Assembly: GCF_002113885.1 (NCBI RefSeq) | Contig: NW_018406415.1 | Coordinates: 1,707,038 to 1,771,037 of the forward strand | DNA length: 64,000 nt | From: Mizuhopecten yessoensis | Taxonomy: Eukaryota | Direction of reading: 5' to 3' | Shown here: piece after piece, positions 43,266 through 55,936 of the stretch | Numbering within the stretch: the first letter of the stretch is position 1 | How the letters are laid out: every line of letters starts with the position of its first letter | Position numbers and translations under genes: made by a program | The notes under the pieces: model-generated | Told to the model about the DNA's origin: nothing | Seen by the model: the letters and a program-made list of their open reading frames with translations, nothing else | The model's database searches: none

Positions 43266-46200
43266 TCACTCCGGCTCTTTCTCTGAGTAGTTGGCCATTT
43301 TCTCCATGCTTTCTAGTATAGGCTGGAAAGAAACAAAATGGAGTCATCGGTAGTCATAATAATATACAACATTTATATAGCGACCTATATAATTTGTAAA
43401 ATTACTCTAAAGCGCTTTCCAACATATGGATAATAGTAATGGTTATAATTGTGAAAACAAAAAACAAAGGATTACAATCACTTTTATACATTTAAGCAAG
43501 CAATGTACACATAATTGAACAAATAAAAGGGTGGTATTTACACGACGTCTTTGCAAGGATTCTAAAATGCAGACGTGAAGAGGTGAGTTCACAACATAGA
43601 TTATGCAGACAGAATTCGATGTTATATATAATACTGTCATTTTGATGAGAACATTCAAGAATTATACGCTTACTATGCAGTTGCTGATATTCGGATGTGT
43701 ACCTGATTTTGCGGTCAATCAAACAACCGCATAACTAAATACCAGATCGACGCTTAGTCAGTATGAATCTATACCATACTAAACTTCAATAAAGTACTCC
43801 AATTCAGTGAACATATAATGGATTATAATGTTAAAGTAACGTCGAATGGTGTCATTATTCAATTTTCAGTACGCGAATTAATACACAGGATATAAATGAG
43901 GTTAGCAAAATACCTCATGCAAAAAAAGAATCCAACAATGCCCCTGCCATAGCCCCTCGCCACCCCCGCCCCCAAAAGATATTGAAATGTTAAAAGTTTT
44001 ATGTATATACATTTATTCACAACGTTTCGGGATCCAGATGATAAATGTGACCATGCCCTATACCTAATTTTCTGTTAGTTAATCGATTTCTCCAAATATG
44101 TCAATTATAACAAAATATTTTAATAAGTTGAATCTATAACACACGAGAACAATATCGATATAATTTCGGTATCTTATGTACATTTTTAGCGCAATGTTAA
44201 TTAGTACTGAAAATTCATTGATGACGTCTTTGTGGAAGCAATGATAATTCTCTTTACATTTATGTAAAATGTGTATGGACAGTTTACATGCACAAACCTT
44301 GTTTTCGTCTTTCAGTGGAGGATTTCTCAGAAGAATGCACAGAGGACTGAAGGCAACGTTGATGATAGCAATACCCCACATTAGCCTGAAACAAAATCAA
44401 AACCTCACAGGTCAATGCAACTTAAATGTTCCAAAAACATATCGAACACTGTTGGTTGTACCCGACTTACAAAAAACCACTGTTATTTGAGATGATTTGT
44501 ATGAAAAATGACATAAGACGAATCTAAAAACTGTTTATACCAAATATCACCACATTGAGTCATTGATAAAACTGCAAAAATCAAACGAGTGTGGTAATTC
44601 TTCGATTGTAAAAACATTGAAAGATAATCATAATATTTTCTTTTGATACAAATCTACTTGTTAAAAAATATTTCAAGGATGGTTTCTTGTTCGTCCTAGT
44701 TATCCATATTATGAATCTTTTCTGTAGATACACACCATGAAAATCCGACAAGCTTCACGATCTGGCCGGCGATTGAGGGACCTGTACGAAAAGGAAATAC
44801 AGATACATGAAATAAATTGTGTTATAATCTATTAATTTGGATATGATGATAATGAAAATGGACAATTTGTTGATTACATCGTTTTTGTAAGCTTACTTTG
44901 TGAGATACAGGCATATCAGTCGGAGAGGATATGGAATACTCCCGAATACAATCATTATCGATCAGTTTTCTTATATTGCTTATTATTTACCCTCCTTTTA
45001 ACGACAAATATTTTTACACAAGACTATACTATGTCACCCTGCATGTTAATGTTGATCTCTAATCGGTCAATCAGCAAAACATTCCCATAAAACCCCGGCC
45101 TTGCCAAGTTGTAAATGATCACGTACCAAGGGGAAGAACTCGCATTTTCTCATTTAATAAAAGCCAATATAGCAGCCAAAATAATATGTTTGATTTGAAT
45201 GTGAATATAGAGGAATATGCATTTACAACGCAGTGTTAAAAATGTTTTTTTTTTAGGTACAAATGTTAAACCTCACTTGCATTCTTGCATATTAAGTCAT
45301 TATTTTCCACCAAGTACATATTCCAAAATGAACAGAGAAAGTTAAAGTTTACATACATTTATAACATGGAATTATGTATTTTACTTCGTTTTCCCCAAAT
45401 GCTTTATATATAAAAGAATATCAATGAATGATATATATATAGAATATCCCACCTATCCCATAAGCCAGACAGACCGCTAACTGTGCTATAGCGTACACAC
45501 TTCCATATACGGCTACGTGACGTGTGTCTACCAATAAAGCTAGTAAGGGCATGATGGCGGCGTCCGTGATACCTGTAACATTTTAACGCATCAATACACC
45601 TTTTAAATTATAAATTGGTTAAATTAGATGACAGGAAAACATTATATCTTTCTTTATTGTCAAATACAAATTATTGTCCACTGTCACCAAAGGAATATAA
45701 ATAAAAATTTCACGTTTTTTTTTAAGTCAAAGTTAATTTATGGTATTTGTCATCAATTTTACAAGGAATAAATTACAAAATTCTATTAAAATTGTGTAAT
45801 GCTTGATGTGAGTGGACAAGCTTCAGACGATATATTTGCGAATACAAGAATACGACAAAGATACAAAAACAAGATAATGCATGCAGAAACATTTGCAACA
45901 TACTGTAAATCCATAATTAGATCTTCTTTCAAAACTTACGCGACACAAACATACGTATTGCGAAATTTAAGTTACTTATATACAGGTACAACTATCAACG
46001 TTTTAATACGGAAACAAAACTCACTGTATCTTACACTTACCCAGGCCAAGTCCGAGACCAAAGTGAGGAAGAATAAGCTCGGCAACACTGGTAGCAAGAG
46101 GGATCTATATCATAAATGGGCAAATCAGTTCAGAAAATCTGTAATACAGCCATTCAAACGGTTGTTGTTGCGGTGTGTTCCATATACTTATACACCGTGA

Positions 46201-55200: not shown

Positions 55201-55936
55201 TTCATAAGTTGCAAAGATATATACCGATATATTTGTATGTCATGTGAATATAACGTTTCAGTTATAAATCACATGCTGGTTTTGTAACATTAGCAAATAC
55301 AAGTAACGCGATCAGCGTTTTTAAGTAAATATAAAACAAAATGAAATAATTCCACTATTATAAAAAATATCAAAACAATTGTCATATTTTGTTCAAATTT
55401 CAGGGGGCAAAATAGAAAAATCATGTTCGTTATTTTTCTCCTTTTCCTTTTTTACATGGGTTACAACAAATTGACGTGTAACATGTTACAACATAAAGGT
55501 TGGTTGCAAGTACTCTTTGATGAACGTATGTAAATATTAACACGATATCAATGCTATAGTATTTGTATCAAAGACAGCGTTATACTTATTCATGTCACAT
55601 TTGAAAATTTTAAACAAGTTATGTTTGTTCTGGTGAAGTGTAATCATGAACTGTGTTTGACCATATGGTATGACAACAGTATGTAATTATTAAGGTTATA
55701 CATATAATATTGTATTACATTTGTATTTATATAAAGAAACCAGGAAATATTCAACAGTGATAAATACCTCGAATCTGTTCGTCTCTGTATTATTTTTATA
55801 TACAGTTTTAGATTGGAAATACCTGCATCATTTGGCTGACTTGTCTATTTTTTTCTTGAATGTTTTCAATTAATTATTTATCTTTACTTTCACTTTGTTA
55901 AGAAGTATACATATATACCATAAAAATGCTTACCAT
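43266..55936 (-). CDS. SLC18 vesicular amine transporter (MFS; VMAT/portabella-like), ~484 aa, 17 coding exons
   Basis: Exons 55936-55934 (ATG only), 55157-55028, 54699-54411, 53750-53692, 51710-51627, 51196-51104, 50395-50306, 48903-48863, 48540-48477, 48057-47962, 47264-47186, 46613-46562, 46104-46041, 45572-45453, 44781-44736, 44385-44298, 43322-43266. All GT-AG; total 1455 nt in frame. SLC18 motifs LDNLLLTAVVPVIP, ENSRVGWLLSSKA, ARCIQGIGS, DDNERSRAMG, GTPLHRLLRDPYI, LEPTVPIW, RHVAVYGSVYAIA and LRNPP. The first exon is the least certain. Confidence 0.93.
49140..49633 (+). mobile_element. SINE family B in an SLC18 intron
   Basis: 49283-49633 closely matches 16011-16395. The extra 5' segment is shared with 42610-42830. 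Confidence 0.8.
52110..53392. repeat. Local direct duplication in an SLC18 intron (52110-52290 vs 53103-53392)
   Basis: TCAAGTAAGTTCGTACAAACAACGTTCAG...GTGTAATCCTGTACATACAACAACCTGATTTAGAACC occurs twice. The second copy has ~110 extra bp. Confidence 0.85.
52997..53035 (+). ncRNA. Candidate minimal type I hammerhead ribozyme (Penelope-type), degenerate
   Basis: CCGC-CTGAAGA-A-GCCT-AAGA-AGGC-A-GAAA-GGTCTA-GCGG contains stem I, the CUGANGA core, stem II, GAAA, a near-palindromic stem III and a UH site. Confidence 0.5.

Follow-up and report, generated by a model that had tools for sequence, protein, structure and literature searches.

Portabella (Prt) of Drosophila has been an orphan transporter since 2011; the fly protein is reportedly neuronal and located on synaptic vesicles. 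Leaving the original 2011 paper aside, we found no paper describing Prt orthologues outside insects, and portabella is treated in that literature as an insect transporter. Two recent monoamine-gene phylogenies overlooked the Prt clade: that of Goulty et al. 2023 contains VMAT and VAChT clades only (PMC10244343), and a 2026 bivalve preprint, in which fly and bee Prt form the outgroup, reports a single VMAT in all protostomes analysed (10.64898/2026.08.17.745212). Here we describe a gene on the minus strand of a 64,000-nt stretch, the window, from the Yesso scallop, Mizuhopecten yessoensis (contig NW_018406415.1, positions 1,707,038 to 1,771,037). An earlier note, made from the letters alone, had proposed a Portabella-like transporter of a "probable mollusc" at this locus, and the organism is indeed a mollusc. 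Our analysis indicates that the locus is very probably the single-copy scallop orthologue of Drosophila portabella (prt), an intact 17-exon gene of a third SLC18A clade, whose product would act as a proton-driven vesicular antiporter, most likely with a substrate different from those of VMAT and VAChT.

Maximum-likelihood (ML) analysis under LG+C20+F+G4 (posterior mean site frequency, PMSF), with support given as ultrafast bootstrap/SH-aLRT, separated three SLC18A clades; the trees have no true outgroup, and the three-clade result is accordingly unrooted. P0194, considered as an outgroup, was rejected when it proved to be a VAChT. The first tree (80 proteins x 483 columns) united 35 proteins that carry Gln at a key position of transmembrane segment (TM) 11, among them the window model and the Musca and Haematobia proteins that NCBI names portabella, in one clade (100/98), hereafter the Gln clade. 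The VMAT clade (98/91) takes in fish, amphioxus and protostome sequences, and the VAChT clade was recovered at 100/100. Two subclades of the Gln clade, one of molluscs (100/99) and one of arthropods (100/99), follow species relationships. A second tree of 47 rows, to which D. melanogaster portabella (P0431, NP_001097887.1) was added, returned the Gln clade at 100/98, VMAT at 97/92 and VAChT at 100/100, with the fly protein positioned among those of other flies. Besides the scallop protein and D. melanogaster Prt, the Gln clade held 23-34 members in these trees, of mollusc, annelid, chelicerate, crustacean and insect origin. The earlier note had proposed such a tree as a check on its reading, and the outcome favors it; the scallop protein groups with P0431, and with Musca and Haematobia portabella, at 100/98, and is not nested in the canonical VMATs in either tree.

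The distribution of the Gln form was followed with exon 14 (TM10-TM11) as the query against a library of 1.84 billion proteins, and the TM11 position was read in the best 150 cluster representatives. Gln was present in 53, Asp in 72, Glu in 5 and Gly in 1, while the motif pattern was unmatched in 19. Named Gln-bearing proteins came from bivalves, gastropods, a chiton and the annelid Ridgeia; from Limulus, scorpions, crayfish, prawn, lobster, a centipede and many insects; and from the tardigrade Hypsibius and the nematode Romanomermis. Nearly all are labelled "synaptic vesicular amine transporter-like". Many molluscs carry a clear Prt orthologue alongside their VMAT, Mytilus galloprovincialis (P0010) among them, and a 2,050-bp Logan contig, which looks like the spliced transcript of an orthologue, contains an uninterrupted 484-aa coding sequence (CDS) of a related protein that is placed among bivalve proteins in the tree. 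As judged from these sequences, SLC18A has, in addition to VMAT and VAChT, a third clade that spans molluscs, annelids, arthropods, a tardigrade and a nematode. A spider origin was established for the two Glu forms, out of five, that were looked up (P0034, Trichonephila; P0051, Caerostris); both read YAIAE in TM11, and if they belong to the Prt clade, the TM11 charge would have been partly regained.

Comparison of the aligned families disclosed six columns that set the Gln clade apart from VMAT and VAChT, a signature derived in the present analysis and not taken from the literature. Residues were counted over non-gap positions in 161 clade proteins of at least 380 aa and in 122 VMATs; human VMAT2 numbers were assigned by aligning its chains with the Pecten orthologue (HMMER), the Pecten protein being identical to the scallop model in the segments used. 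The class-defining residue is Gln408, opposite VMAT2 D426, which is Gln in 161/161 clade proteins and Asp in 122/122 VMATs examined. In TM8, Asp319 stands opposite A337 (Asp in 156/156 clade proteins; A/C in VMATs) and G322 opposite S340 (Gly in 160/160; S/A in VMATs). The remaining columns are Y218, opposite P236 (Tyr in 157/157; P/A), H370, opposite N388 (His in 159/160; N/M), and V411, opposite F429 (Val in 160/161; Phe). The same six residues are found in fly Prt. What the earlier note had singled out as oddities of this protein, namely the TM11 Gln, an extra TM8 Asp, VGYPFGG and TTTAMA, are all common to D. melanogaster Prt (YAIQQ, FIPDS, GYPFGG and STSTMA, respectively) and represent the signature of the clade. 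Its statement that fly Prt bears Gln in TM11 was borne out directly on the fly protein; the Asp-to-Gln change that it reported is located at Gln408, encoded by CAG at exactly 45483-45481. Since all clade members examined share this Gln, related species included, it is neither private to the scallop nor an error. At a further position, D262 in TM6 of human VMAT2, VMAT and VAChT proteins invariably have Asp, whereas the Prt clade varies: of 161 members, 48 have Asn, 38 Ser, 22 Asp and 14 Thr, besides other residues. Scallops are among the Asp bearers (residue 244 of the window model, exon 7).

The window model conserves the charges of TM1 (D33), TM2 (K120), TM6 (D244), TM7 (E294) and TM10 (D381), and with them the intramembrane charges typical of SLC18A (D33, K138, E312 and D399 in VMAT2 numbering). 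The spliced minus-strand model contains every motif quoted in the earlier note: LDN at residues 32-34, SKA at 119-121, VGYPFGG at 216-222, ALDL at 242-245, TTTAMA at 286-291, LEP at 293-295, FLPDS at 316-320, ITDA at 379-382 and YAIAQ at 404-408. For the family and PDB scans, the joined 480-aa model, built from the window sequence, was represented by its Pecten orthologue P0155, to which the window exons align throughout. P0155 matched Pfam MFS_1 at 1.5e-49 and the human VMAT2 chains at E about 1e-121 across residues 2-455, in agreement with the 12-TM fold of the major facilitator superfamily (MFS) and with full-length similarity to VMAT/VAChT.

The gene extends over 55936-43266 on the minus strand and comprises 17 coding exons, with a CDS of 1443 nt encoding 480 aa without an internal stop; 16/16 introns are GT-AG. 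Exons were located with tblastn of database homologues as a guide, followed by enumeration of frame-keeping GT/AG pairs, and minus-strand stop-free stretches at 43.2-55.2 kb hold all the SLC18 motifs named beforehand. Both end points given in the earlier note were accurate: the TGA stop ends at 43266, and an ATG, with a consensus donor (gtaagc) directly after it, begins at 55936. A direct join of exon 7 to exon 9 was ruled out on phase, and a frame-constrained scan revealed that a 41-nt micro-exon at 48903-48863 (VLQIAILRPTLHQK) fits the gap exactly. Along its whole length, the 480-aa model is 88.7% identical to the full-length orthologue of Pecten maximus and 86.5% identical to that of Argopecten irradians.

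RefSeq holds a 404-aa protein of M. yessoensis, P0168, to which the window exons are 100% identical; an exact look-up of P0168 found no additional contigs. Its label, "synaptic vesicular amine transporter-like", is what the earlier note had forecast in expecting automatic annotation as a VMAT. P0168 begins at Met31 within TM1 and, through an internal donor near 54490 and the omission of exon 4, is without TM2 (the conserved Lys included) and part of TM3. It is a poor gene model; the Pecten and Argopecten orthologues favor the longer 480-aa form.

Searches of the scallop assembly (987,588,634 bases, 82,659 contigs) with exon 14 and with VMAT proteins found a single Gln-type locus, the window gene. 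The separate Asp-bearing VMAT and VAChT genes, whose presence had been suggested as a check, were both recovered. Contig C5386 (869.6-908.4 kb) harbors a multi-exon canonical VMAT, in which TM11 reads YAIADVAFC and the exons, 73-96% identical to Argopecten VMAT, cover residues 1-534 of the latter; VAChT occupies an intronless frame of 579 codons on C1549 (YAIADISY). A short VAChT-like fragment (…LAYLVDVRYSSVYGSVYAIADISY…) was also observed on C5587 (1511952-1515029, minus strand; about 1333-1653 within the locus), after which similarity is lost; it is likely a pseudogene piece of the intronless VAChT.

To interpret the signature, we relied on published structural work on human VMAT2. In that protein, D33 and K138 are surrounded by a polar network of TM1, TM4 and TM11 to which D426 belongs, N388 and E312 form a pair next to the ligand, F429 contributes to the inner gate, and F334, S338 and Y341 of TM8 provide the lumenal gate, the water wire and the inner gate (PMC10959523). 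A337 falls among these TM8 gate and wire residues on the same helix, beside S338. Proteins of the Gln clade would still act as proton-driven vesicular antiporters, because the carboxylates of TM1, TM7 and TM10 and the TM2 Lys used by VMAT and VAChT are kept. Their cavity, by contrast, appears re-modelled; the acidic TM11 partner of the Lys would be neutralized, a new carboxylate introduced in TM8 and His substituted for the Asn that pairs with E312. Such a re-modelled cavity suggests that the substrate is most likely other than a classical monoamine or acetylcholine. The new TM8 Asp could take over from the lost TM11 Asp as the partner of the Lys, as helical periodicity hints; K138 and the A337 position are one turn down from F135 and F334, two residues in contact at the lumenal gate, an arrangement that would allow Lys and Asp to pair. 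For a signature kept for hundreds of millions of years, a different substrate is the most economical interpretation.

One alternative concerns timing and not identity. It holds, as a tentative option, that the Prt-like clade is a protostome-specific VMAT duplicate, fast-diverged and sister to protostome VMATs only. All named clade members found are protostomes, the branches of the Gln clade are long, and most introns of the window gene fall at about the same positions, to within a few residues, as introns of the C5386 VMAT gene of this genome. The ML trees argue otherwise, as they join vertebrate and amphioxus with protostome VMATs to the exclusion of the Gln clade (98/91, 97/92); in the approximately unbiased (AU) test, a tree joining the Gln clade to protostome VMATs only was not rejected (delta lnL 6.8, p-AU 0.085). 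The ancient third lineage proposed in the earlier note corresponds to the ML topology, with the protostome-only duplication unrejected. From the clade support and the AU result together, it follows that the scallop protein is securely a Prt orthologue and that an origin before the bilaterian split is an ML result, unproven. We consider it doubtful that this third vesicular amine-transporter lineage predates the divergence of protostomes and deuterostomes, with later loss from the deuterostomes, and that a conserved charge relocation (a neutral TM11 residue, a TM8 Asp facing the TM2 Lys, His for N388) adapted it to load a small-molecule transmitter throughout protostome nervous systems, those of molluscan ganglia among them.

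The scallop protein might instead be a second monoamine transporter, VMAT-like with altered kinetics or proton stoichiometry, which we regard as unlikely. The equivalents of D33, K138, E312 and D399 are all retained, and among solved structures those of human VMAT2 and VMAT1 come closest to the Pecten orthologue (E about 1e-121, 410 bits; VAChT 270). Neutralization of the TM11 Asp alone, however, reportedly abolishes VMAT2 transport, and this is the very position at which the clade bears Gln. Moreover, six positions are altered alike across the clade, and N388, D426, F429 and the neighbor of S338 belong to the cavity, gates and water wire of VMAT2 (PMC10959523). The same six changes in all clade members point to selection for a different pocket.

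That the gene is a decaying or unexpressed copy is very improbable; although half of TM1 and all of TM2-TM3 are missing from the sole public model, P0168, the 17 exons join at canonical splice sites into an unbroken 1443-nt frame, and the protein is 87-89% identical to those of other scallop genera and has every functional residue in place. That a VMAT copy diverged in molluscs or scallops alone and converged on the portabella residues is scarcely credible, since, despite an identity to fly Prt (about 41%) no greater than that to VMATs, the Gln clade was recovered at 100/98 in two data sets with an internal topology that follows species, and six common signature positions are unlikely by convergence. 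Pseudogene, scallop-private substitution, sequencing error and mollusc-only VMAT copy were all rejected.

Several observations nonetheless weigh against our identification of the gene as a portabella orthologue with its own substrate. The scallop protein is 43-45% identical to VMATs versus 41% to fly Prt, and the best solved relative of the clade protein is VMAT2; for these reasons, residual monoamine transport by the scallop protein is possible. Branch lengths put the evolutionary rate of the Gln clade at roughly three times that of VMATs, and the position of the clade outside all VMATs could partly reflect long-branch attraction. The RefSeq model represents a different, TM2-less splice form. 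The one-codon first exon (ATG) is a plausible start predicted from the genomic letters, and the Pecten and Argopecten orthologue models begin differently. Lastly, vesicular localization and a transmitter role are predictions for the non-insect members.

The exons are distributed along the minus strand as follows. The coding part of exon 1 (55934..55936), the proposed start ATG with donor gtaagc, is frame-compatible with exon 2 (55028..55145; acceptor ttgcag, donor gtaaga), which encodes the N-terminus and TM1 with Asp33 in LDN and is 79-87% identical to Pecten/Argopecten. Exon 3 (54411..54699) carries lumenal loop 1, with N-glycosylation-type motifs, and the TM2 Lys120 in SKA. The start of TM3 is found in exon 4 (53692..53750; RFGYTALLFIGTNTLLLSSI), which is present in the Pecten/Argopecten proteins and skipped in P0168, and is followed by TM3-TM4 in exon 5 (51627..51710; ARCIQGIGSAASTIAG) and the TM4-TM5 loop in exon 6 (51104..51196; LLADRYQDDNERSRAMG). 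Exon 7 (50306..50395) spans TM5-TM6 and contains the clade-specific GYPFGG with Tyr218, as well as the TM6 Asp244. The micro-exon, exon 8 (48863..48903), is identical to the RefSeq model P0168 and precedes the cytoplasmic loop of exon 9 (48477..48540; GTPLHRLLRDPYILVAAG). TM7, with TTTAMA and Glu294 in LEP, is encoded by exon 10 (47962..48057), and TM8, with the clade-specific Asp319 in FLPDS and with Gly322, by exon 11 (47186..47264). TM9 is shared between exon 12 (46562..46613) and exon 13 (46041..46104), the latter continuing into TM10 and bearing the clade-specific His370. Exon 14 (45453..45572) unites TM10 Asp381 in ITDA with TM11 Gln408 and Val411. The TM11-TM12 loop (GPSIAGQIVKLVGFSW) is located in exon 15 (44736..44781), TM12 in exon 16 (44298..44385), and the C-terminal tail with the TGA stop in the coding part of exon 17 (43266..43322).

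Elsewhere in the window, a GC-richer stretch at 5200-7690 on the plus strand is a Ty3/gypsy-type retroelement pol region, with long open frames matching the Pfam reverse transcriptase, RNase H and integrase domains RVT_1 (1.6e-34), RT_RNaseH_2 (2e-31) and rve (1.4e-14), respectively. Tandem arrays were observed at 1-360, at the window edge (38-bp unit, 9.5 copies, 99% match), at 12538-13170 (34/68/138-bp) and at 40614-41359 (147-bp unit, 5.2 copies), the last about 2 kb downstream of the transporter stop codon. A poly-G run of 47 bases, with one N at 19794, occupies 19789-19835.

The sequences compared show that Prt proteins, a third VMAT/VAChT-family branch whose re-modelled pocket is conserved, are spread across protostomes and are no insect peculiarity. 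Databases give Prt genes the label "synaptic vesicular amine transporter-like", so that expression studies with "vmat" as a monoamine marker could conflate VMAT and Prt. Six residues of the translocation pathway, nearly invariant in the clade, define concrete mutants for tests, and molluscs, with their large identifiable neurons, provide a second system in which to seek the Prt substrate. New here are the re-classification, the better gene model and the clade-wide signature; the gene structure is ordinary, and RefSeq already had the gene in truncated form.

Among described systems, D. melanogaster portabella (prt, CG10251; NP_001097887.1 / Q9VCJ5) is the one with which the scallop protein shares an ML clade at 100/98. 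The two have in common the TM11 Gln, the TM8 Asp, GYPFGG, His at N388, Val at F429 and Gly at S340, and both keep the equivalents of D33, K138, E312 and D399; identity is about 41% to Prt of Musca, a close relative of the D. melanogaster protein. They differ in length (480 aa in scallop, 602 aa in D. melanogaster), in TM11 (YAIAQ versus YAIQQ) and in TM6, where scallop has Asp, D. melanogaster Prt has Ser and the Musca and Haematobia orthologues have Asn. VMAT1 and VMAT2 (SLC18A1/A2; human VMAT2 structures, e.g., 8ucj and 8x3k), the best solved relatives, resemble the scallop protein in the predicted 12-TM MFS architecture, the large, probably glycosylated lumenal loop 1 and the charges of TM1, TM2, TM7 and TM10. 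In contrast, the scallop protein has Gln for Asp in TM11, differs at the five other signature positions and stands outside the VMAT clade (98/91). VAChT (SLC18A3) shares the SLC18A family and charged residues but is more distant than VMAT from the clade protein (270 bits vs 410), and the scallop VAChT gene is intronless where the window gene has 17 exons. The vesicular polyamine transporter SLC18B1 shares the MFS fold and the SLC18 family, and it was rejected as the family of the scallop protein on a marginal match (41 bits, E 1e-9). The scallop gene is a mis-labelled, mis-modelled addition to the known orphan Prt family and no new kind of system.

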